Virus record (IMG/VR): IMGVR_UViG_3300021964_000012
Location: 264,293 to 328,292 of that record
DNA: 64,000 nucleotides
Reading direction: 5' to 3' (one strand)
A program made the translations under genes and the position numbers. Below, piece after piece: positions 14,072 through 48,048 of the stretch. A model generated the notes under the pieces. That model made no database searches and was not told the DNA's origin. It saw only the letters and a program-made list of their open reading frames with translations. The number at the start of each line of letters is the position of its first letter. Within the stretch, counting starts at the first letter, position 1.

Positions 14072-14467
14072 CTATTTTCTTGGTTTTACTGTTTTCTTTG
14101 TACCTACTGTGCCTTTAAGACTCGTTTTTGGCGGTTTGTATGCTTTTTGTACTTTTCCACCTGATGATACTGTTTGCTTACGTATTTTATTAAGCATACC
14201 TAACAGTTTACTTGCTGGATTTACACGTTTTGTTTTTTTGGCTTTGCGAGCAGCCTGTTTGCTTTTGGTTTTACGAGTCACTTTCATTTGTGCTCGGCGC
14301 TTTTGATCTATTGGTGCATCGCAATCTTTGGCATTGCCAACAACCCGTCCACGTCTTGCACCACTGGTACAACGCCATTTGGTTTTGAGCTTGTTGCCTT
14401 TTCGTGAGAACACCATTTCGTGCTCATTGACAATCTCAGGTTTGGAAACAAACTCCTCAACACGCAT
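14072..14467 (-). CDS. Basic Lys/Arg-rich hypothetical protein
   Basis: Start at ATG overlapping the gp13 stop (TAATG); 131 aa, strongly basic. Confidence 0.7.
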   Translation of the reverse strand: MRVEEFVSKPEIVNEHEMVFSRKGNKLKTKWRCTSGARRGRVVGNAKDCDAPIDQKRRAQMKVTRKTKSKQAARKAKKTKRVNPASKLLGMLNKIRKQTVSSGGKVQKAYKPPKTSLKGTVGTKKTVKPRK

Positions 14468-15240
14468 TAGCCAATTACCCAAGTAAGTGGTTGCGATCCA
14501 TCAACATAGTTTTTAAGTTCTTCAATCTTGGCATCCATAATAGCAGAACCTTCTGCTTTCATCTGTGCACCGTTCAAAGCAGTACCACCTTGCGGGCCTG
14601 CAATAGTAGCAAACTTTTCTCTAGCTTCTCCAATAATCAGTTTACAGTTTCCAATCATGTAGTCTTTTATCCACTGTGATGTAGAAAAGTCAGTTAATAG
14701 TTGTACCTCAGGACGTAGATTATAGCACCAAAGCAGAACTGTTTCTCCTGAACCTTTTATGTCACGCATTAGTGTAATTTGTTTTGTTGCACTATTGAAA
14801 TTGTAATTTAAAAAACCACCAAACATTTTTGCAGTTAGTTCTACATACTGACTATAAAAATCATAGGTAGCAAGACCACCCATCTGATTGCCATTAAGTA
14901 AATAGGTGTTTAGTGCCGCCGAACTAAAAGGTTCAAATGCTGATCCTTCTCCGCCATTGCTAAATCCAATTGTACGTCGAAACACCTGCCTAACGGTCAT
15001 GATTTCGCTTGGCAATGTGTATATGTTTGTGTCTTCTCTAAGAGTGAGAAAATTATAACTTTCTTCAAATGCATTTTCTGCCCTTTGTCGATAGACACCA
15101 ATAGCTCTTTGATAAGCACTTTCATAATGACTTGCATCAAGTTCAGTATCAATTATGCCTTCGCCTAATTGTAACTTGATGTAATCAAATACTTCTTGCT
15201 TTTTTGTTTCTAATGTTTGATCAAGTGTTTCAGTTGCCAT
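14467..15240 (-). CDS. gp13: Neck protein
   Basis: YIKLQLGEGIIDTELD, WIKDY...K..IGEAREKF, LNGAQMKAEG. Confidence 0.85.
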   Translation of the reverse strand: MATETLDQTLETKKQEVFDYIKLQLGEGIIDTELDASHYESAYQRAIGVYRQRAENAFEESYNFLTLREDTNIYTLPSEIMTVRQVFRRTIGFSNGGEGSAFEPFSSAALNTYLLNGNQMGGLATYDFYSQYVELTAKMFGGFLNYNFNSATKQITLMRDIKGSGETVLLWCYNLRPEVQLLTDFSTSQWIKDYMIGNCKLIIGEAREKFATIAGPQGGTALNGAQMKAEGSAIMDAKIEELKNYVDGSQPLTWVIG

Positions 15241-37847: not shown

Positions 37848-39050
37848 TTATGAGAATGATAAGTTCTGAACTGCAATCTCACCTACATAGTCACCGGCAT
37901 TTCCAAATGAACTTGCAGTGTTTGATAACTCGATATATCCATATCTAGTCATAAAACTTACTACTGGCTCAAATGATGTCGGATCTAGTACAACACCTGA
38001 ACTCATTAGCGGTACGTATGGGCAGTAGAAAGCTGGAGCGTCTGTTTCAGATGCACCTTTGTATCCTACTAATACTGCTTGAGTGTCAGCTGCATATGAA
38101 TCACAGAATACTCTCATTGTACCGTTTAATGTACCTACAAACTTTGTGTTTGTTGGTGCTTCAAAAGTACCTTCTGTAGTTCTAGCAAATGCTGAAGTTG
38201 TAGCTGATTGTAACACTGTTAATGAAGCTGGAGAAACAACTGCATAGTTACCTGCACCACGTCTTGTACGTTGTGCAATTAAGTTAGCTGTTCTGTTGAT
38301 CAATACTGCTAAAGCGGCATGCTCATCACCAACGAAAGTAGCAGTACCTGATACTGCAGCCTGGTTGTATGTGAACTCAGTTGCGGCTAATGTACGTAGA
38401 GATAATAGAATCTCTTGATCGATTTCTGCAGTAATCTCTTGAGCTAATGCTGCCATGATTTCTGCTTCTACGTCGATACCGTGCATTGCTTGTGCATCTT
38501 GAGCTGCTTCAAAAGTCCAACGTGCTTGTAACTTACGTGTCTTTGCTTCTACAGCTTGCTTTAAGATTTGAACAGAAATATTTCTTCCGCCTAATCCTTC
38601 CATAGCTGCTGTTGCACTTCCACCGTAACCAGTTGCGGCTGATGCTGCACCAGTTCCGTTAGCACCTGAATATGCAGTTGCAATTTTGAATGGTGATAAT
38701 GCTTCATCGCCAGCTGCTGTTGGAGTAGCGGCTGCTGAAGTATCTGCCATTGCTGTTGCATAACGTACTCTTAGTGTATGGATTTGACCAACTGGTCCAG
38801 TCATAGGCTGAACACCAACTAATTCGTTGGCTATAACAGTTGGCATAACACGTCTGATAACAGGCAAAATAACTCTGTTAAGAGTTGCAATGTTACCTGA
38901 TGCAGTTGAACCCGCAGTTGCGTTTTCATTTAAGTGTTTGCGAGTGTTTTCTAATATAACACCCATTGTTGAGCGACGAGCACCTTGTAATCCTTCTAGG
39001 AGGGCTTCTTTGGTCTCACCCCAACGGCTTTCTAGTAGTTCTTGTGACAT
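37848..39050 (-). CDS. gp23: Major capsid protein
   Basis: VGVQPMTGPVGQI, VEAKTRKLQARWTFEAAQDAQAMHG, EITAEIDQE, YCPYVPL, MTRYG. Confidence 0.97.
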   Translation of the reverse strand: MSQELLESRWGETKEALLEGLQGARRSTMGVILENTRKHLNENATAGSTASGNIATLNRVILPVIRRVMPTVIANELVGVQPMTGPVGQIHTLRVRYATAMADTSAAATPTAAGDEALSPFKIATAYSGANGTGAASAATGYGGSATAAMEGLGGRNISVQILKQAVEAKTRKLQARWTFEAAQDAQAMHGIDVEAEIMAALAQEITAEIDQEILLSLRTLAATEFTYNQAAVSGTATFVGDEHAALAVLINRTANLIAQRTRRGAGNYAVVSPASLTVLQSATTSAFARTTEGTFEAPTNTKFVGTLNGTMRVFCDSYAADTQAVLVGYKGASETDAPAFYCPYVPLMSSGVVLDPTSFEPVVSFMTRYGYIELSNTASSFGNAGDYVGEIAVQNLSFS

Positions 39051-39069
39051 TAAATGTCTCCTTTTTTAG

Positions 39070-40152
39070 TTAAAGCCCTGCTAGGCGTTTCAAGGCAATG
39101 ACGTTTGAATCGTCATCTGCTTTATCGACAACCTTTGCAGTTTTATTACCAGTTTGTTCAGTTAAACTTGCAGCCTTTTTAGTTGCTTTGGTTTCGCTCA
39201 ACACTGCTGGCAAATATTTTTCAAAAGCGTTCTTCAATCGAGATGTCTGAACGTTTTCAAGTAAGTTAGTCATAATTTCTCTCTTCTCATCATTGAGAGG
39301 AGATAGAAGCTCGTCCAATGTAGCATCACGCTCATTGGCTTCTTTTATAACTTTGATTTCGTTATTTTTGCTTTCAACAAGTGCTTTCGCCTTGTCTTTA
39401 ACAGCAATGGCTTCTGCCAACTGTTTATCTTTTTCTACAATAGTTGCATTAAGTTTACGTACTTCTTCATTTTCATTTAAATGTGTAGCACCAAACTCAG
39501 TTGCATATGCTTCGAAGATTCGACGACCAAAATTGTTCTCACGAGCAATTTTAATGTCTTCTTTAAGTTGACCCATTTCAGCCTTAAGATGCGTAGATAC
39601 AGTTGAAGCCATCTTCTTAGCAGATTCTTTTATGAACTTGCTCTTTAGATTATCAAGTTTATTGCGTGCTTGTGAAACAAGTCTTACTTTAGTTTCCACT
39701 AAGTCTTTCTTGTCAGCAGCAAATTCTTTGATTTCTTCAGCTAAAGCACCAACAACAAATTTTTCTAATTTTTCAAAACCTGTTTTTGATACCTTACGAT
39801 CTGTGCGTAGTTCTTTTAACTCTTCTGAAAGTTGTTTAACTAAAAAGCCGTTAAACTTATCAGCATTTTCTTTCATCTTGTTATGAAACTTAACACGATC
39901 TTCAGCTAATGCTTTCTTCTCTTCGTTAAGAGCTGATATTTCATTAGCTAAGCCTTCTGTAACCATTTTATCTAGGGCTTCTACCATCACAGTTTTGTCA
40001 TGCTCATAGCGTTGTGCAAACTCCTCACGAAGTTCAGCACGCACTGTCTCTTTGGCCTCGACCATTTTTGCTTCCCATTGTTCAGCAATAGCAGTACGAG
40101 TGTCCTCATTGACGAGATCGCTATCTAATAGTGGTTTAATAGCATCTAACAT
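39070..40152 (-). CDS. gp22: Prohead core scaffold protein
   Basis: Coiled-coil Glu/Lys-rich protein between protease and capsid genes. Confidence 0.85.
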   Translation of the reverse strand: MLDAIKPLLDSDLVNEDTRTAIAEQWEAKMVEAKETVRAELREEFAQRYEHDKTVMVEALDKMVTEGLANEISALNEEKKALAEDRVKFHNKMKENADKFNGFLVKQLSEELKELRTDRKVSKTGFEKLEKFVVGALAEEIKEFAADKKDLVETKVRLVSQARNKLDNLKSKFIKESAKKMASTVSTHLKAEMGQLKEDIKIARENNFGRRIFEAYATEFGATHLNENEEVRKLNATIVEKDKQLAEAIAVKDKAKALVESKNNEIKVIKEANERDATLDELLSPLNDEKREIMTNLLENVQTSRLKNAFEKYLPAVLSETKATKKAASLTEQTGNKTAKVVDKADDDSNVIALKRLAGL

Positions 40153-40161
40153 GCGATTCTC

Positions 40162-40788
40162 CTAAATTTTTAGGTCTCTGATAAGACGAGAAACTTCGTC
40201 TTTCAGGTACTTTTGTATTTTGCCGTCTTTCCCAGACTCACGAGCCATTTCTAAAATGTGATGCCCATGTTTCATGTTCATCAGTCCTTCATAAATTGCT
40301 TTTGGATAAGCATTTGGAGCACTGGGTTGTGCGACCACGTCTACAGTGACTATTTCAAAGTCACTGACACGTCCGTTATGTGGATCAACGTTACCTGATC
40401 CACGACTCGAGACGCCCAATCTCACACCGGATTGCAACATTGTTTTAACTAGTTGCCCCATTGGAGTTGGGAGAATTTTTAGTTTTCCATAACCATTAGG
40501 TCCGTCCATCCACATGCGTTCAATCATGTGACATACACGGTCTAAATTAATCTTAAGGTCATCTGGATGATCTACTTCGCCAAGAACGCTTGTTGTTTTA
40601 ATTTGTTCATTCAGTGTATCAACTGCTTCTGCAATTTGACTCACTGGATAGATACGTTCATTGGCATTTTTCACGTCACCTTGTATGCAGATGCCTTCCA
40701 TATAGAGGTCCTTACCATCTTTGCCTTCAACAATGTTGATTTTTGCGGCTTCAAAAGTAAGTTCCTCTTTAAGGTATAGCTGTCCCAT
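40162..40788 (-). CDS. gp21: Prohead protease
   Basis: NANERIYP, LGEVDHP, PTPMGQ, GVSSRGSG, DVVAQPSAPNA. Confidence 0.95.
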   Translation of the reverse strand: MGQLYLKEELTFEAAKINIVEGKDGKDLYMEGICIQGDVKNANERIYPVSQIAEAVDTLNEQIKTTSVLGEVDHPDDLKINLDRVCHMIERMWMDGPNGYGKLKILPTPMGQLVKTMLQSGVRLGVSSRGSGNVDPHNGRVSDFEIVTVDVVAQPSAPNAYPKAIYEGLMNMKHGHHILEMARESGKDGKIQKYLKDEVSRLIRDLKI

Positions 40789-40809
40789 GTACGTGATTCC
40801 TAGTCTAGA

Positions 40810-41718
40810 TTAGTCTATAACACTTTTGGTGTTAACACCAGAAGCTTGTGATAATTCAGGCTTTGGAGCTGGTTTTACATCTGGCTTTGTAGTTCCATCC
40901 ATGTCACCATATTTTGGTGTTGAACGACCTGATGTGTTTCCATCTTTGATGTCGACTGGCTTTGCATCCATTCCTTTTTGACCTGAGTTAGCAGCTACTG
41001 GACTTTTACTAGCTGGTGATGTTGTAACTGGCTTAGGAGCTGCAACTAATTCTACACCTTCTTCTAAACCTTCTACTTCAACATTAACATCGATTGGCTC
41101 GTCCATTTTGTCTTCCATGCCATCAATCTCGTCCTGCTCCATGTCAGTATCGCTATCAATGTCTGAAATCTCGTCTTGCTCGCCTTCAATGTCGTCTGTG
41201 TTATCGTCAACCTGTGCCATTAGCTCTTCGAATTCACCCATTAGTTCGTCTAATTTGTCTTCGATGTCTACTACACGGTCTTCTAATTCTTCTTCGCCGT
41301 CATCGTCATCAACGTCTACGTCGATCATTTCGATTTCTTCTTCCTCATCTTCCATTCTGACGCCTTCTTCTTCGGCCTCAACTTCGTCAATGAGATCGTC
41401 AACCTGTGATCCACCTAAATCTGTTTCATCAATCTTTTGATCGTTGTCATGTTCTGCGTCACGCTTGCCACGCTTTCCCATTTCGTCGTCTCTACGATCT
41501 TTCATTGATTGTTTTTTGCCTGATTCAGCACCGTCTTTAGCACCTAAATGCTCATCTTCGCGGTCCTTGTAACCTTGCTTTTCTGTAATTTCTTCTTCTG
41601 ACATAATGTCTTCGTATATGTCTTTTGACTTTTCCACAACAATCTCATGGAAAAGAGCTTTTGCATTTTTTTCATCATCGTTGATGACGAATTCAATAAG
41701 TTGCTCAAATTTGTTCAT
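40810..41718 (-). CDS. Acidic prohead core protein (gp67/gp68 position)
   Basis: Highly Asp/Glu-rich 302-aa protein between portal and protease. Confidence 0.65.
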   Translation of the reverse strand: MNKFEQLIEFVINDDEKNAKALFHEIVVEKSKDIYEDIMSEEEITEKQGYKDREDEHLGAKDGAESGKKQSMKDRRDDEMGKRGKRDAEHDNDQKIDETDLGGSQVDDLIDEVEAEEEGVRMEDEEEEIEMIDVDVDDDDGEEELEDRVVDIEDKLDELMGEFEELMAQVDDNTDDIEGEQDEISDIDSDTDMEQDEIDGMEDKMDEPIDVNVEVEGLEEGVELVAAPKPVTTSPASKSPVAANSGQKGMDAKPVDIKDGNTSGRSTPKYGDMDGTTKPDVKPAPKPELSQASGVNTKSVID

Positions 41719-41829
41719 TAAAATAATCCTTCTAAGTATTGGGCTCAGTATAGTACTTACAAGAAAATTAAAAAACTAGTAGTTTATAGGGGTAAAAGTG
41801 GTAGAAAATGAATTATTTTCTGTGCTAAC

Positions 41830-42045
41830 CTACATCTGTGGTGGAGGTGGAGCAAATTGTGCTTGAATACGTTTGAGATCTTGCTTCTTCTCATAGTTTC
41901 TAAGATCGTACATTCTACGCAGTTTAGATATCTGCTTTAGTGTTAGTTTTGTTTTACGCAACTCGCCAAGTTCCGGAACAGAGTTATCGTCTTTCTGTTC
42001 TTGATATCCGTCTGCTGGTGCATCATAAAATTCAAATAGTTTCAT
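41830..42045 (-). CDS. Small prohead-associated hypothetical protein
   Basis: 71 aa; RKTKLTLKQI motif; late box 5 nt upstream of the ATG. Confidence 0.7.
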   Translation of the reverse strand: MKLFEFYDAPADGYQEQKDDNSVPELGELRKTKLTLKQISKLRRMYDLRNYEKKQDLKRIQAQFAPPPPQM

Positions 42046-42053
42046 AATAGTAT

Positions 42054-43802
42054 TTATGCAGGAGGTTCTTCAGGAGCGGCTGGTGCAGCCATGTCAACAT
42101 TTACATCAACTTCTTCGCCACCTGCAGCTTCTTCACCAGCAACTGCATCTCCCATCTGTACATCACCTTCAAAGTCGCCAGGGCTTACACCTACTGTACG
42201 TAAATCACTACCAGTTGGTTCAGTTTCAATTGGTTGTCCCGTTTCTTCTTCCCAATACTCAGTATTTTCTTGAAGTTCATCGTCGGTTAATCCAAGGTAG
42301 CGTTTCAGAAGAAAACGCTTGCTCATGTAGGGCAGTTGTTCCAATGCACTGAATGCTTGTATTCTAGTTGTGTCTAGTTCGGCCTGTCTATAGCTCGCAA
42401 AATTCTGTGGAGGTGCAAATGTAATGTTAAAAAGTCCACTGTCAATGTTGAACCCTCTCCAACGCATGAACATTTTGAATTCATCATCAAGTTTTTCAAT
42501 TACCTGCTTTTGCAATCTTTCGCAGTATTGATTGAATCTGTATTCTTGTATGAGTGCAGTACCAACTCTACCGTCGTTCATTGGTCGATCTGAGTCATCT
42601 GGACCGGTTGGTAGATAACTGCTAGGAACACGCAAGCCTCTGCACATTTTGTTGTTAAAGTATTTTAAATCGTCAATCTGTCCAAGGTTTTCACCACCCG
42701 GCAGTGTTTCAACTTTTGATCCACGTCCTTCGGCAGTTTGAGGAAAGAAATAGTCTTCGTTTATGCTCAATGGATTGTAAGTTGTATCCATGGTTGTTGC
42801 TTGTTGACCACCCTGTGGATTTGGGATACGTCTTTGATGTACTTCATTTTTCACACGTTCGACAAACTGCATGGCTAGATGTGATGGCATGTTTCCAACA
42901 TCAATGTAAAATACACGTCTTTCAGGAGCACGTTGTACTCTGTATATAAGAATAGCATCTTCAAGCAATTCTTTTTGTTTGAACACTTTGAATATCATTT
43001 CCAGCACACTCTGCGAGAAAGGCCAGAAAAAATCTAATCCTTCACTGAGTCCAAGATGCACTACATTTTTAGCATCAATTACGGTTTCATTTACTGTGTG
43101 TTCGAATCTGCTTTGTCCAGCAGGAGCATTTGGAATGGTATAGTTTGAACCACCCATGGCACTGCCACCAGTTCCAATTATTTCGCCTGAGTTTAATCCA
43201 GTGCCATAGTCGGTGGTTTTCTTTGGTGCAATACTGAGATTTTGAAAGTTTGGATTTATATCTCTAATCACATACTGCTCAGGACGTTTGCCTTCATTTT
43301 CATTAACAATCACACGCACAACCTTGGTCATGTCAACCCAGTATAGTTCAAATGTTTCTGGATCACGCACAAACACTTGATCGCCGTACTTTATAGTGTT
43401 CCTAAAAATACGAAACATACGCTGATCAAGTTTATTAAGTTTTGTCCACTGTTGTAGTTGTGTACGTATTATTTCAATTTCATTATTTGTTGGTTTATCA
43501 GTGTATTGCACTTCAAATGGAGTATTATTGCTTTCATTCTTTTGTGTTGCAAACTCTGCTATAATGTCCAAACAAGCATTGATTTCACTGTCAGTATCCA
43601 TGTTTTCATACTGATTGTAGCGTTCTATCCTGTTAGGATGACCAGAGTATACTTCTGGTAGATGACTTTGATAGTTTTTAAAACCAAACTGTCCGCCAGA
43701 ACCACCACTACCATAAGCAGGACCCCTTGCGTTTTGTCCACTTATAGGACTCAGTTGACCACCGGTGCTACCAACTGCTTTGAAGTATTTTTTCCAGGAC
43801 AT
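42054..43802 (-). CDS. gp20: Portal protein
   Basis: LLEDAILIYRVQRAPERRVFYIDVGNMP, EDYFFP, TLPGGENLGQIDD. Confidence 0.97.
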   Translation of the reverse strand: MSWKKYFKAVGSTGGQLSPISGQNARGPAYGSGGSGGQFGFKNYQSHLPEVYSGHPNRIERYNQYENMDTDSEINACLDIIAEFATQKNESNNTPFEVQYTDKPTNNEIEIIRTQLQQWTKLNKLDQRMFRIFRNTIKYGDQVFVRDPETFELYWVDMTKVVRVIVNENEGKRPEQYVIRDINPNFQNLSIAPKKTTDYGTGLNSGEIIGTGGSAMGGSNYTIPNAPAGQSRFEHTVNETVIDAKNVVHLGLSEGLDFFWPFSQSVLEMIFKVFKQKELLEDAILIYRVQRAPERRVFYIDVGNMPSHLAMQFVERVKNEVHQRRIPNPQGGQQATTMDTTYNPLSINEDYFFPQTAEGRGSKVETLPGGENLGQIDDLKYFNNKMCRGLRVPSSYLPTGPDDSDRPMNDGRVGTALIQEYRFNQYCERLQKQVIEKLDDEFKMFMRWRGFNIDSGLFNITFAPPQNFASYRQAELDTTRIQAFSALEQLPYMSKRFLLKRYLGLTDDELQENTEYWEEETGQPIETEPTGSDLRTVGVSPGDFEGDVQMGDAVAGEEAAGGEEVDVNVDMAAPAAPEEPPA

Positions 43803-43838: not shown

Positions 43839-46361
43839 TCAGTTGTTGCGAGCGGCCTGTAATTGTTCGCCTTGTAATCTTGTGCCTTTGGTTGTTTGAT
43901 CCAGCATGGCCTGTAGTACACCAAGAATTTTCTCGTTACTGCCGCCATCACCTTGCATCGTTTGCGTTTCTCCTGCAGCTGGACCACCTTCCATGTCTGT
44001 GAGTCCTTGGTTGCTAATAGATAATCCACCTGCGTCGCCGAGTTTTGGGCCAGCAACTGATCTAAGTTGACTTAGTGCATCAAATTGACCACCTGTAGCA
44101 GCACCTTGAGCACCAACTGTTACACCATCTCCCATGCCATAACTCATTGAAGAAACTCCGCCTTTGCTAGTGTAACTGCTTACATTTCCTTTGTCTATTC
44201 TTTGGCCAGCCATTTGACCATTTACATAATCTCTTTCGTAGTTTACACCGCCAACAGTTCCTTGCATGCTCATCGAAGTTGATGCATCTGCTGAACTGCT
44301 CATTTGCACGCCGCCTATTCTTGGTCCTTTTCTATAGAGTTCGTTTCCTCTACTGTCCACTGTTACAACAGAACCATCGCCGAGTTTGACATCAAAGGTT
44401 CCTGGTATTCTTCCTGGCACACCTGGACCAACCTGTCCTGGTATTACCACTCCACTGGTTTTTCCCATTTTCAGTAATTCTGGTCCTTGTTCACCAACCA
44501 AATAGGTTTTACCTGCTTCGGCTGCTCCACCTTCTGCAAAACTACCAGCAACTTTAGCTTTACTTTTATCACCGCCTGAAGAAAAGTATCCAGTTAACGC
44601 ACCAATTAAAGCACCAATTCCTCCGCCAATTGCTGTTCCTATTCCAGGAGCTATCGCTGTACCTATAGCAGCACCGGCTAATCCCAGTGTGCCAGCGCCT
44701 TTTAATGCATTTCCTGTACGATCAATAGTTTCGTCTTTTATTCCTGCGTCTTCTTGCATCTTTTTCATCAGACCAGGTATACCATCTTTAATCAGTGTAT
44801 CCATGTAGCCAACCAGCGATGACATGGTTTTTAATTGTATTTCAGCAAACTTTTTCACTGCCTCACTGGCCAATGGTAAAGTTTTATCTAAGGCAAATTG
44901 ATCAAGTGCAGTAGCGGTTTTAATCATGGCTTCTTGAGCACTTACAACGTTCTTGGTTAACGAGTCTTGTGTGTTTGCAAGTTTGTTTGTTTCGTCTGTT
45001 GCTTTTTTAGAAGCTGCACCAAGATCTTTTGTAAAGGTCAAGGCTTGAAGTGCTGGAATAAGATTTTCAAGTGAAGTTCCCATTTTACTAACTTGAGATG
45101 CAAATGCATCGCCACCTAGTCCTTGGTAGAATGTTTTACCTTGTTCTTGTAGCATGCTCAGTGCAGTTGACGAATCAATGGCACCAGATTTTAACTGCGA
45201 TATTACCTGTTGACCAACTGGTCCCATGACTTTTAAGAATTCTTGAGCAGCTGGTGTTCCGGCATTGCTTAGTGCATCAGCTAAACCATCACCAATTGCT
45301 TTTAAACCAGGTATACTGTTCAGTGTGGTAATTGTTTTAAGTGTAGCTTGAGCGGCATCTTTACCATTTTTACGCTCAATTTCACGTATTGATGCACCTT
45401 GTCTAGCATCACGTTGGACTGCATCAATTTCTTTCTGAGATTCTTCAATGCTTTTTCCAGTAATCTTGGATAGCTCTTGTAGATTCTTCATGTACTCTCG
45501 AGAACCTTGAGCCAGTGCTTGTGTGTTCTGAACTTCGTTACGACCTTGTCTTTGTTGGAACTGAATATATTTTGCGGTTAGTTCGTTTTGTTGTTCAACA
45601 CCTATACCGAGTGTGAGCAATTCTGACCTAAATGGTCTCATGGCTTTGGTTGTATCGCTTAATCCTTTAGCAGCTTCAGCACTTGTGCCAAATGCAAACG
45701 ATAATGTTTCACCTTCTTTGGTTACTGTTTTTGCAAAACTATCAAAACTCAATCCAGCATTCACAGCCTGTTGACCAAGTCCACGCATTCCGTCAGCACC
45801 AAGAGCACCAGTCTGTGCCGCAGTTCTAAAAGCACCAGTGATTCTATCTAGTTCAGCAGTAAATGTTTTACCAACTGCACTTACTATTTCACCAGCAGCT
45901 TCGCTTAGAGCCGCTATCATAGTACCTGCAGCCTTTCCTAGTCCTCCAATTAAAGGTATAGCTCCAATAGTTGCTGATACCAATCCGCCTGTGACTTTAC
46001 CAGCCATTTTGATTGCACTACCAGCCATTTCAATAGACGGATTTAGACTGCGAAACGACTCTCTGTTGTCTCGCATAGCAGTTGAAGCAGCTTCTAGTGC
46101 TTGTGCAACGCTTAAGGTTCCACCAATTGCTTTTGTTGTGGTACGCATCGCCTTAGTTGTTAGACTTTGGCGTTGTCCTTCTTGTTTCATGCCTTTGGCA
46201 GTTAAGCCTTGCTCTTCTTTGTCAAGTTTGTTGCCTGACTTTAAAAGTTTAGTATAGTCTTCGAGGCTTTTTTTAGCATCCTCCATGTCAGGGCCAGAGC
46301 GACCGCCAGCTCGTTGTAGCTGTTCTAATATTTGTTGCAGTAGCCGCTCTTGTTCGTCCAT
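43839..46361 (-). CDS. Tape-measure-like protein
   Basis: Long Ala/Gly-rich helical protein with glycine-zipper hydrophobic segments and FAEGG...YLVGEQGPEL motif. Confidence 0.7.
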   Translation of the reverse strand: MDEQERLLQQILEQLQRAGGRSGPDMEDAKKSLEDYTKLLKSGNKLDKEEQGLTAKGMKQEGQRQSLTTKAMRTTTKAIGGTLSVAQALEAASTAMRDNRESFRSLNPSIEMAGSAIKMAGKVTGGLVSATIGAIPLIGGLGKAAGTMIAALSEAAGEIVSAVGKTFTAELDRITGAFRTAAQTGALGADGMRGLGQQAVNAGLSFDSFAKTVTKEGETLSFAFGTSAEAAKGLSDTTKAMRPFRSELLTLGIGVEQQNELTAKYIQFQQRQGRNEVQNTQALAQGSREYMKNLQELSKITGKSIEESQKEIDAVQRDARQGASIREIERKNGKDAAQATLKTITTLNSIPGLKAIGDGLADALSNAGTPAAQEFLKVMGPVGQQVISQLKSGAIDSSTALSMLQEQGKTFYQGLGGDAFASQVSKMGTSLENLIPALQALTFTKDLGAASKKATDETNKLANTQDSLTKNVVSAQEAMIKTATALDQFALDKTLPLASEAVKKFAEIQLKTMSSLVGYMDTLIKDGIPGLMKKMQEDAGIKDETIDRTGNALKGAGTLGLAGAAIGTAIAPGIGTAIGGGIGALIGALTGYFSSGGDKSKAKVAGSFAEGGAAEAGKTYLVGEQGPELLKMGKTSGVVIPGQVGPGVPGRIPGTFDVKLGDGSVVTVDSRGNELYRKGPRIGGVQMSSSADASTSMSMQGTVGGVNYERDYVNGQMAGQRIDKGNVSSYTSKGGVSSMSYGMGDGVTVGAQGAATGGQFDALSQLRSVAGPKLGDAGGLSISNQGLTDMEGGPAAGETQTMQGDGGSNEKILGVLQAMLDQTTKGTRLQGEQLQAARNN

Positions 46362-46427
46362 TTAATTTTTTACCTGTTTTAAAGCCGTATAAGTACACTT
46401 ACAACTATATTTATGGTAGGAAAAAAC

Positions 46428-47330
46428 ATGGCAATACAACCAGGCGCCCCAATTCAACCAGTACAACCAGTGATACCAAAAACTGCACACGCACCATCAG
46501 GCAATCCATTGGCTAAACACTTTAGACAACCATCGATCTATATAAAATTGCCCAGTGAAGGTGTATGGTATGATGAATCTATTATTACTATCCCCGAATC
46601 AGGCGAAGTACCTGTTTATCCAATGACTGCACTTGACGAAATCACTTATAGAACTGCTGATGCATTGTTCAATGGACAAGCAGTTACAGATGTTATCAAA
46701 AGTTGCATACCTGCATTTAAAGATCCCGCACGAATCAGCACGTTGGATCTTGATACTGTGCTTATAGCAATTAGATTGGCAACTTTTGGTCATGAAATGG
46801 AATTTACCAGCAAGTGTCCAGAATGCGAAGAATCAAATGATCTTGCACTTGATCTTAGACAAATTATGGAAAAGGTTAAAAAACCTGACTTTGGATCACC
46901 GCTGTCATTTGGTGATATTGAAATACATTTCAAACCGTTGACCTACAAAGAACAAAACGACAACAACATGGCACAGTTTGAAGATCAAAAAACCATGGAA
47001 AGCCTTCCAAATATGGAAATGTCTGAAGAAGAAAAACTCAAGATACTGCAAAAAGCATTTGGAAACATCAGCAAACTTACACTTGTTGCACTTGCAGACA
47101 GTATCAGCATGATACAATCAGGCGATGATGTTGTTGTTGATCGAACACACATAGCAGAATATTTGGAAAATTGTCCATCACAACAGTTTGAAAAGATTAG
47201 AGAGAAGATTGCTTCAATCAGAGAAAGTGGAGAAATGGATCCACTGCACATAGTGTGCAACGATTGCAAACACGAATATACCACACCATTTACAATGAAT
47301 GTTGCAAATTTTTTCGCATCAGGCTCTTAA
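46428..47330 (+). CDS. gp26: Baseplate hub assembly protein / tail chaperone
   Basis: NPLAKHFRQP.IYIKLPS.G, PMTALDE, D.DTVLIAIR.AT.G, two CxxC motifs, C-terminal NFF; start at ATG 46428 after AGGA. Confidence 0.8.
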   Translation: MAIQPGAPIQPVQPVIPKTAHAPSGNPLAKHFRQPSIYIKLPSEGVWYDESIITIPESGEVPVYPMTALDEITYRTADALFNGQAVTDVIKSCIPAFKDPARISTLDLDTVLIAIRLATFGHEMEFTSKCPECEESNDLALDLRQIMEKVKKPDFGSPLSFGDIEIHFKPLTYKEQNDNNMAQFEDQKTMESLPNMEMSEEEKLKILQKAFGNISKLTLVALADSISMIQSGDDVVVDRTHIAEYLENCPSQQFEKIREKIASIRESGEMDPLHIVCNDCKHEYTTPFTMNVANFFASGS

Positions 47331-47545
47331 CGTCCACGTCTGAAGAGATTGAAAAAATCATTGACGACATGGACAAAGAAGTTAAGAGCCTTAAAGAAAG
47401 CATGCTTAGAAGCGTTTGGTACATGCGAGGTGGTGTTACATACACCGAAATCGTAAACATGAGCTACGATGAACGAGTATCAATCAACAAAATCATCGAA
47501 GACAACTTAGAAACTGCAAAGAAAACTGGAAGAGATTTTTGGTAA
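47313..47545 (+). CDS. gp51: gp51-like baseplate assembly ORF (possibly a -1 frameshift extension of gp26)
   Basis: WYMRGGVTYTEIVNMSYDER motif; -1 frame relative to gp26; no clear SD at internal ATGs; start uncertain. Confidence 0.6.
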
Positions 47546-48048
47546 TCGATCAAGTGAAGGCTGATATTGAAGATTGGTTGATCAACTTTGTAGAAGTTCC
47601 TCATCCAGCACTAGGAAACTGGCCACCATGTCCGTTTGCTAGGCAGTCAAGACTGAGAAACAAGTACGATGTAAGACCAGGCGCAGATGTTGAACGTGAT
47701 TTATTTTTGTTTGCTAAGAAACAGTACCTGGGTAAAAACGATGTTGTGATATTTGCCTACGCTCCTGACCAGTATGATGATGCCTACTTCAACTGGGCAG
47801 TAGACACTATGAACATGAGCAAAGGTTTTAAAAAACGCAACCTACTAGCACTAGCAGATCATCCTGACACAGTCGAAACACACAACGGTGTCTGTTTCAA
47901 CATGGGTAAATATGCACTAGTATTACTACAAGACAAAACTAAACTAAACGAACATGCACGTATGTTAGCACACAGAGGCTACTATGATGGATGGGACGAA
48001 GAATACCTGCAAGAGGTATTTGCACATAGACGAGATCCAAGAAAATGA
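47539..48048 (+). CDS. Hypothetical protein (DUF1415/DUF6875-like CPFA motif)
   Basis: WL..FVEVPHPALG..PPCPFA, DHPD; TTG start. Confidence 0.55.
   Translation: MVIDQVKADIEDWLINFVEVPHPALGNWPPCPFARQSRLRNKYDVRPGADVERDLFLFAKKQYLGKNDVVIFAYAPDQYDDAYFNWAVDTMNMSKGFKKRNLLALADHPDTVETHNGVCFNMGKYALVLLQDKTKLNEHARMLAHRGYYDGWDEEYLQEVFAHRRDPRK

Follow-up and report, generated by a model that had tools for sequence, protein, structure and literature searches.

We examined a 64-kb window of a marine jumbo phage (64,000 nucleotides, positions 264,293 to 328,292 of IMG/VR record IMGVR_UViG_3300021964_000012) containing a gp26-like baseplate-hub assembly gene next to a divergently oriented large ORF. The features at this locus are as follows.

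43839-46361, minus strand: 840-aa divergent neighbour, a putative tape-measure or virion structural protein.
46413-47330, plus strand: gp26-like baseplate-hub assembly gene, 0-frame product of 305 aa, with a second ATG at 46428 as a possible alternative start.
47309-47315, plus strand: slippery heptamer T_TTT_TTC, in phase over the Phe300-Phe301 codons, overlapping A_AAT_TTT at 47306-47312, which would give the same product.
47316-47320, plus strand: 5-nt spacer between the heptamer and the stem.
47321-47391, plus strand: predicted stem-loop with an outer 11-bp helix (47321-47331 with 47381-47391) and an inner 5-bp helix (47332-47336 with 47370-47374).
47328-47330, plus strand: 0-frame stop (TAA) of gp26, inside the 5' arm of the stem.
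47315-47545, plus strand: -1 frame extension of 76 codons plus stop (RIRLL...DFW), probably equivalent to the C-terminal domain of gp51.
47369-47545, plus strand: the 58-aa ORF that gene callers annotate, a possible but unnecessary independent start.

The gp26-like protein is a member of PF12322 (T4_baseplate; E 1.1e-16, 61.6 bits against a cut-off of 24.5) and matches the baseplate hub family phrog_150 (E 1.6e-22). It is the only PF12322 gene in the complete 328-kb genome. A blastn search of the locus against phage genomes found no match. The 840-aa neighbour is only weakly identified, with hits to phrog_14121 (virion structural protein, E 1.4e-8) and phrog_1538 (tape measure, E 8.6e-4) and no BLASTP similarity to T4 gp29, although syntenic large ORFs in RaK2, CBB, GAP32 and PA5oct are annotated as virion structural proteins, in RaK2 with a note that it is TMP-like. 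The last codons of the gp26-like gene (47304-47330) contain both X_XXY_YYZ heptamers in the frame of the 305-aa ORF, and the -1 frame reads FFRIRLLTSTSEEIEK...WYMRGG... and is open to the TAA at 47543-47545, with its first ATG at 47369. To assess whether this arrangement is expected by chance, we scanned both strands of the whole window for an in-phase heptamer with at least 150 open codons upstream, a 0-frame stop within 20 codons and at least 55 open -1 codons, which returned only this site. With relaxed criteria, a second candidate at 14234 (T_TTT_TTG) was found in a spurious ORF antisense to real genes and was dismissed.

The in-phase heptamer is conserved in about 32 gp26 loci from deep lineages, including marine relatives, RaK2-like phages, Atu_ph07, PA5oct, the cyanophages S-PM2 and P-SSM2, and KVP40. 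Thirty of these have T_TTT_TTC, whereas RAS14 and RsoM2USA have T_TTT_TTT; the overlapping A_AAT_TTT is not conserved in other lineages. The codon preceding the heptamer always ends in T although it encodes N, H, S, R, Y, V or D. In the marine relatives, and in most other lineages read, the 0-frame stop is the second codon after the heptamer; the window has TCA where the marine relatives have that stop, and the TAA-to-TCA change is synonymous in the -1 frame (ATA to ATC, Ile). The -1 peptide is conserved starting exactly at Phe-Phe in 17 diverse loci (FFR[IM][RQK]LL..PEEI...), while the 0-frame tails differ in both sequence and length. It is therefore effectively excluded that the configuration is a chance arrangement, a decaying gene or a sequencing error, even though homopolymer runs are error-prone and the window comes from a metagenome assembly: the same configuration occurs in dozens of independently sequenced isolates and assemblies, the T6 run is identical in independent DNA runs, and purifying selection acts on the -1 frame.

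We next considered whether the small gp51-like ORF could be translated on its own as a free peptide of about 58 aa, either from ATG 47369 or, in other phages, by termination-reinitiation at an ATG next to the gp26 stop. Databases do annotate it in this way, as a 57-aa ‘gp51’ in S-PM2 and P-SSM2, as KVP40.0327 and in many 58-aa gene calls, an ATG overlaps or abuts the gp26 stop in Atu_ph07, Phosso, 121Q, KVP40 and the cyanophages, and Met21 is invariant in the window clade. However, the 18 codons between the heptamer and ATG 47369 (extension codons 3-20) evolve like coding sequence in the -1 frame only, with variable sites by codon position of 7/3/15 and a synonymous:nonsynonymous ratio of 166:129, against 42:268 and 11:294 in the other two frames. 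Six of nine close relatives have no ATG, GTG or TTG before codon 21, and the -1 frame is closed 0-3 codons upstream of the heptamer in several lineages. Considering Met codons only, the first in the extension is at codon 34 in RaK2 and 51 in RsoM2USA, and PA5oct has none at all, while the codon that is ATG in Atu_ph07 is ATA, ATC or ATT elsewhere. In the window, the UG of ATG 47369 is paired in the inner helix of the predicted stem and no Shine-Dalgarno-like motif is apparent directly upstream. Independent translation also does not explain the invariant in-phase heptamer or the NNT codon before it, and we consider it unlikely as a replacement for the frameshift, although re-initiation could supply a free peptide in addition to the fusion in some phages.

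Folding of the 85 nt downstream of the heptamer (47316-47400) gave an MFE of -28.3 kcal/mol and a z of -6.3. The same stem appears in all 10 clade members (z from -3.7 to -6.3), with 98% of cells paired against 19-48% when the partner columns are slid. Within this clade it shows only one-sided (wobble) changes and no compensatory double changes. Atu_ph07 (z -6.7) and Phosso (z -3.4) keep the 5' arm with re-matched 3' arms, but this compensation is read from separate folds in a shifted register. Hairpins are found 3-9 nt downstream in P-SSM2, S-PM2, KVP40, PA5oct and L035, whereas RaK2-like phages show little predicted downstream structure. The same fusion could in principle be made by transcriptional slippage, with RNA polymerase adding one extra U, as the site is a homopolymer run (T6 in the window, T7 in RAS14 and T9 in RsoM2USA), long runs are slippage-prone and a one-base insertion gives the same protein. 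We regard this as improbable because T6 is generally short for efficient slippage by bacterial polymerases, the run ends in C in an X_XXY_YYZ phase, and the conserved spacing to a downstream stem and the 0-frame stop directly after the site are features of ribosomal frameshift cassettes. No indel was seen at the run in contigs from two metatranscriptome libraries, although this is weak evidence as contigs drop rare variants.

Interestingly, 18 representative clusters encode natural in-frame fusions of PF12322 and the extension (319-351 aa) whose junction DNA is not a homopolymer, and in all three contigs read the fusion has a short paralogue directly upstream. These fusions show only that the fused architecture is viable. 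A search for related loci with the fused protein P0233 found nothing. T4 gp51 is colinear with the fused product, comprising PF12322 (residues 1-201) followed by a C-terminal domain (PF28602), and the P-SSM2 -1 peptide aligns with gp51 residues 200-246 starting at the junction Phe (E 2e-6). The window extension matches gp51 only weakly, although colinearly at gp51 residues 221-255 (hhalign E 8.5e-4 and 1.7e-3, probability 15-24%), and its link to gp51 rests on the cyanophage intermediate and on the shared architecture. BLASTP of the Munch extension against T4 gp51 gave no alignment, hhalign of full-length fusions against gp51 aligned only the N-terminal domain, and an HMM of the extension against 92 gp51 sequences scored at most 9.4 bits against 5.6 for the best of 1840 shuffles, the hits being consistently colinear. 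PF12322 copy number is one in the window genome, RaK2, Atu_ph07, PA5oct, Munch, S-PM2, P-SSM2 and KVP40, and two in T4.

Taken together, this comparative evidence suggests, in the absence of experimental confirmation, that the phage very probably (probability about 0.85) uses a programmed -1 ribosomal frameshift to make a short and a long form of one baseplate-hub/tail-initiation assembly factor from a single gene. Ribosomes reaching T_TTT_TTC with Phe-tRNAs in the P and A sites would be slowed by the stem-loop beginning 5 nt downstream, and a fraction would slip back one base. Those that do not slip terminate five codons later and release gp26 (305 aa), whereas those that slip read CGC ATC AGG ... 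and add 76 residues to residues 1-301 of gp26, giving a predicted 377-aa gp51-equivalent with a PF12322 domain followed by a helical C-terminal domain. The original prediction of a -1 frameshift fusing gp26-like and gp51-like ORFs is thus supported by every comparative test that it proposed, and the label gp51-like is appropriate because the equivalent small ORF is annotated gp51 in S-PM2, P-SSM2 and KVP40 and aligns with the C-terminus of T4 gp51. Three qualifications apply: its inference of a G/GT-type chaperone pair is an analogy of logic and of chaperone role and not homology, the putative tape-measure gene beside the site is divergently oriented rather than downstream, and the T4 genes are two paralogues rather than two halves of one gene.

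We found no description of a gp26/gp51 frameshift in the literature searched, which excluded subscription-only papers. If the frameshift is real, hundreds of phage genomes, including model cyanophages and RaK2-like, PA5oct and Atu_ph07 jumbo phages, annotate a short orphan ORF or nothing at all after gp26 where the real product is probably a fusion of about 340-380 aa. It would also extend the rule that long-tailed phages make two forms of a tail chaperone by frameshifting to a non-homologous protein family and to the T4 superfamily, and provide a natural experiment, one gene with a slip versus two genes, on why a fixed ratio of two forms is needed. For T4, it raises the hypothesis that gp26 and gp51, whose roles in hub assembly have been described as contradictory or unknown (PMC3004832), are the short and long forms of one chaperone, needed together. 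T4-related phages, which have lacked a recognised equivalent of the near-universal tail-assembly-chaperone frameshift, would then have one after all. The ancestral state would be a single gene with a -1 slip at the Phe-Phe codons, still present in cyanophages, KVP40-like phages and many jumbo phages, which the T-even lineage, and independently some marine phages, replaced by gene duplication into a short and a long paralogue, giving the long-enigmatic ‘catalytic’ gp51 a role as the GT-like partner in hub and tail-tube initiation. We consider this evolutionary scenario about as likely as not.

Among known systems, the E. coli dnaX (tau/gamma) -1 frameshift is likewise a bacterial-type cassette with a heptamer, a short spacer and a downstream stem-loop yielding two forms of one protein. 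In dnaX, however, the frameshift gives the shorter product and uses an upstream Shine-Dalgarno-like stimulator, whereas here it gives the longer product and no upstream stimulator was seen. Lambda gpG/gpGT, P2 E/E+E' and Mu gp41/42 (Xu, Hendrix and Duda 2004, as cited in PMC9024508) similarly produce a short form and a C-terminally extended long form through a -1 slip on an X_XXY_YYZ heptamer near the end of the short ORF, in a gene of the tail-initiation module. In KVP40 the order tail-tube-like, gp26, gp51(-1), large ORF, gp3 mirrors lambda V-G-T-H, although the identity of the large ORF is unproven and PHROGs gave no function for the large ORFs downstream of gp51 in KVP40 and P-SSM2; in the window the putative tape measure is upstream and divergent. 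The T4 homologues are listed as assembly chaperones and gp51 is absent from virions (PMC3004832), but the CBB homologue is annotated as a structural protein. The window protein is larger, carries two Cys pairs and has no sequence or fold relationship to known chaperone families, as Pfam, PHROGs and NCBIfam gave only PF12322 or baseplate hub and Foldseek of a pLDDT-90 model found nothing in the PDB. A complex prediction of gp26, the extension and the tape-measure C-terminal part gave no answer, and the chaperone role remains inferred.

T4 gp26 (208 aa) and gp51 (249 aa) are listed as hub assembly chaperones and belong to PF12322, and the window protein ends at the same Phe-Phe motif as T4 gp26 (EFFELL*), the Cys columns and the Phe being nearly invariant in two family alignments. 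T4 differs in using two separate, divergently transcribed paralogous genes, its FF codons are TTC TTT, which is not slippery, and gene 25 follows gene 26, while the window extension is about 25 residues longer than the gp51 C-terminal domain. The small ‘gp51 baseplate hub assembly catalyst’ ORFs of S-PM2, P-SSM2 and KVP40 are annotated as independent 55- to 57-aa genes starting at a Met 4-5 codons after the slip site, with no frameshift indicated in the three records. However, they sit in the same position and the same -1 frame relative to gp26, and share the T_TTT_TTC, the stop one codon later and a downstream hairpin, and are the same feature in other families.

The sequence is as described in the original prediction, which had proposed a programmed -1 frameshift fusing a gp26-like to a gp51-like ORF. 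The 305-aa gp26-like ORF ends GCA AAT TTT TTC GCA TCA GGC TCT TAA and contains two in-phase heptamers, and the -1 frame reads FFRIRLLTSTSEEIEK...WYMRGG.... The locus comprises the following features:

46413-47330, plus strand, 305-aa gp26-like ORF
47306-47312, plus strand, in-phase heptamer A_AAT_TTT
47309-47315, plus strand, in-phase heptamer T_TTT_TTC
47255 to 47543-47545, plus strand, open -1 frame up to its TAA stop
47369, plus strand, first ATG in the -1 frame
47321-47391, plus strand, predicted stem-loop
43839-46361, minus strand, divergent 840-aa neighbour

Both strands of the 64-kb window were scanned for any in-phase X_XXY_YYZ heptamer with at least 150 open codons upstream, a 0-frame stop within 20 codons and at least 55 open -1 codons, and only this site was returned. 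Under relaxed criteria a T_TTT_TTG with 57 open -1 codons was also found at 14234-14240, but it lies in a spurious plus-strand ORF antisense to a Lys-rich gene (14072-14482, minus strand) and is a chance match.

The ORF is a member of Pfam PF12322 (T4_baseplate, the gp26/gp51 family; 61.6 bits against a cut-off of 24.5) and of phrog_150 (baseplate hub). The complete 328,292-bp virus genome with terminal repeats, of which the window is the last 64 kb, contains no other PF12322 gene. Two in-frame ATGs are present in gp26, at 46413 and 46428 (window 46413-46430, MVGKNM...), and the MVGKNM stretch is conserved at the DNA level in relatives, so either could be the true start. The divergent 840-aa neighbour has only weak hits to a virion structural protein family (E 1.4e-8) and a tape-measure family (E 8.6e-4). 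It is directly followed on the minus strand (37848-43802) by genes for the portal (phrog_213), prohead protease (phrog_207) and major head protein (phrog_138), and the tail-initiation genes therefore abut the head module in this phage. A 169-aa ORF of unknown function (phrog_28122; 47539-48048) starts at a TTG that overlaps the last codons of the -1 extension by 7 nt, which may indicate translational coupling to the frameshift product. Relatives are marine and estuarine jumbo phages, and more distant relatives include RaK2-like phages, Atu_ph07, Phosso and PA5oct.

We read the 3' end of gp26 in about 32 loci, comprising ten marine relatives at 65-78% protein identity and two more marine contigs; Atu_ph07, Phosso and Munch; CBB, Serratia BF, GAP32, RaK2, 121Q, PA5oct, RAS14, RsoM2USA, Vibrio 2.275.O, XbC2 and Yen9-04; further IMG/VR contigs; the T4-like cyanophages S-PM2 and P-SSM2; and the schizo-T4 phage KVP40. 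All of them carry T_TTT_TTC in phase over a Phe-Phe pair, 1-11 codons before the gp26 stop, with the exception of RAS14 and RsoM2USA, which carry T_TTT_TTT instead. The codon before the pair always ends in T although it encodes N, H, S, R, Y, V or D, pointing to selection on the nucleotide rather than on the amino acid. Downstream of Phe-Phe the 0-frame tails differ in sequence and length (ASGS, A, E, GFSFSLPNQKK and others, each ending at the stop). In contrast, the -1 peptide is conserved from the very first residues (FFR[IM][RQK]LL..PEEI...) and runs 59-84 codons. In the window itself, a TAA-to-TCA change lengthens gp26 by three residues, and the same change is a synonymous Ile change (ATA to ATC) in the -1 frame. 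This conservation excludes sequencing error or gene decay as an explanation of the arrangement.

In several lineages the -1 frame is closed 0-3 codons upstream of the heptamer, so it cannot be entered from further upstream. The first Met of the -1 frame wanders, being located at codon 5-6 in KVP40, the cyanophages and 121Q, codon 21 in the window clade, codon 34 in RaK2 and codon 51 in RsoM2USA, while PA5oct has none. Among nine close relatives, the variable sites in the 18 codons between the heptamer and ATG 47369 are distributed 7/3/15 by -1-frame codon position, and the synonymous:nonsynonymous ratio is 166:129 in the -1 frame against 42:268 and 11:294 in the other two frames, matching the rest of the extension (488:501). 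Six of the nine relatives have no ATG, GTG or TTG anywhere between the upstream -1 stop and codon 21. Independent initiation or re-initiation of a free small peptide may occur in lineages that have an ATG near the stop, but it cannot explain the conservation upstream of the ATG, the lineages that lack an ATG in the extension (PA5oct) or have it only far downstream (RaK2, RsoM2USA), or the invariant heptamer. The reference genomes of RaK2, PA5oct and RsoM2USA annotate nothing at all in the 220-250 nt after gp26 where the conserved -1 extension lies, and Atu_ph07 annotates only a 40-aa fragment that starts inside the WYMRGG motif.

A profile of the extension was searched against 1.84 billion representative proteins, resulting in 417 hits, most of which are short ORFs. 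Interestingly, eighteen of the best 150 are 319-351-aa proteins with the extension at their C-terminus. These are PF12322 proteins that align colinearly with the window gp26 up to the Phe and then continue in frame with FR.KL[IL]..EE[IV]...W[YF]MRG..., which matches the -1 peptide of the window. Their junction DNA (AGT TTC CGT; AAT TTT AGA) is not a homopolymer, so these are not sequencing artefacts. All three contigs that could be read place a short gp26-like paralogue, ending at the Phe motif, directly upstream of the long one. In one phage with separate short and long paralogues (locus L038, 1690-1704), the short paralogue still ends TCT TTT TTC AAT GAC TAA, retaining the heptamer although the -1 frame closes after two more codons, which may be a relic of a former frameshift site.

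T4 itself has two PF12322 genes. Gene 26 (208 aa) ends EFFELL with the non-slippery codons TTC TTT and is followed by gene 25, whereas gene 51 (249 aa) is divergent and consists of PF12322 (residues 1-201) plus a 48-residue C-terminal domain, listed as PF28602 in a precomputed table. The small -1 ORF is annotated as 'gp51 baseplate hub assembly catalyst' in S-PM2 and P-SSM2, and in KVP40 as 'similar to a 40 amino acid stretch at the C-terminus of T4 ... gp51'. BLASTP aligns the P-SSM2 -1 peptide with gp51 residues 200-246 at E 2e-6, and the alignment begins at the junction Phe, upstream of the annotated Met. The longer extension of the window matches gp51 only weakly, but colinearly (hhalign E 8.5e-4 and 1.7e-3). 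Translation of a free small peptide cannot explain the colinearity with gp51, nor the natural fusions. PF12322 copy number is 1 in the window genome, RaK2, Atu_ph07, PA5oct, Munch, S-PM2, P-SSM2, KVP40 and Vi01, and 2 in T4. The simplest reading is that a short and a long form are both needed, and that they are supplied either by one gene with a slip or by two paralogous genes. In Salmonella phage Vi01 (NC_015296, about 47500-47700; about 2250-2440 in the coordinates of the extracted locus), the single gp26-like gene ends ...TEIFI (GAA ATT TTC ATT TAA) and a gp51-C-like peptide (..YSIFEISESMPWHLDLL..) lies in the -1 frame, but there is no perfect X_XXY_YYZ heptamer, only T_TTC. Ackermannviridae may use a variant slip site or another mechanism.

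In the window, a 5-nt spacer after the heptamer is followed by the stem-loop at 47321-47391, with an outer helix of 11 bp (AGGCUCUUAAC with GUUAAGAGCCU) and an inner helix of 5 bp that sequesters the UG of ATG 47369. The 85-nt stretch folded (47316-47400), which contains the stem-loop, gives an MFE of -28.3 kcal/mol and z -6.3. All ten clade members form the stem (z -3.7 to -6.3), and on their alignment 98% of cells pair, against 19-48% when the partner columns are slid. The five variable pairs change on one side only, mostly to wobble pairs, and there is therefore no formal covariation within the clade. Atu_ph07 (z -6.7) and Phosso (z -3.4) keep the 5' arm (GGCUCUU...) and have re-matched 3' arms (ACAAAGAGCC; GGCAAGAGCC), which lie in a different codon phase and encode different residues, arguing for selection on the pairing itself. 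P-SSM2, S-PM2, KVP40, PA5oct and contig L035 have their own hairpins 3-9 nt after the heptamer, while RaK2-like phages show little predicted structure.

Transcriptional slippage would give the same protein. Contigs from two DNA runs and two metatranscriptome-library runs bridge the junction with no insertion or deletion at the T run, although contigs hide rare variants and low-level transcriptional slippage is not excluded by this observation. In all four runs the summed contig depth peaks at 47293-47332, the 40 nt that hold the heptamer and the 5' arm of the stem, because contigs of diverged strains align only there, which makes it the most conserved DNA of the locus. Transcriptional slippage is disfavoured by the short T6 run, the phase of the run and the spacing to the stem, but it is not excluded, particularly for Ralstonia phage RsoM2USA, in which the slip site is a T9 run (1566-1576 of the extracted locus). 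The T_TTT_TTT of Stenotrophomonas phage RAS14 (1604-1610 of its locus) is likewise long enough that it could also support transcriptional slippage.

A high-confidence model of a natural fusion (pLDDT 89.9, pTM 0.85) shows an alpha/beta core followed by four helices that make up the extension. It matches only T4-like baseplate hub and assembly proteins among predicted viral structures, and nothing in the PDB. The family therefore has no solved structure and, on this comparison, is not related to known tail assembly chaperones. In T4, gp26 and gp51 are listed as hub assembly chaperones, and gp51 is reported to be required for assembly but absent from the particle (PMC3004832).

The small 'gp51' ORFs and their similarity to the C-terminus of T4 gp51 are already present in public annotations. 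Full-text literature searches found no paper proposing that they are expressed by frameshifting from gp26, or that T4 genes 26 and 51 correspond to a G/GT-like pair; the former is inferred here from comparative evidence alone, and the latter is only suggested by it. In KVP40 the gene order is tail-tube-like, gp26, gp51(-1), a 656-aa ORF, then gp3, which resembles lambda V-G-T-H, but the large ORF has no assigned function. The original prediction had inferred a G/GT-type chaperone pair. We conclude that the pair works like G/GT in logic, meaning two forms in a fixed ratio from one gene in the tail-initiation module, with the chaperone role inferred from T4, whereas membership in the G/GT protein families is not supported. 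The arrangement is very probably a canonical -1 cassette in a tail-assembly gene, but in a different protein family and in the T4 superfamily.
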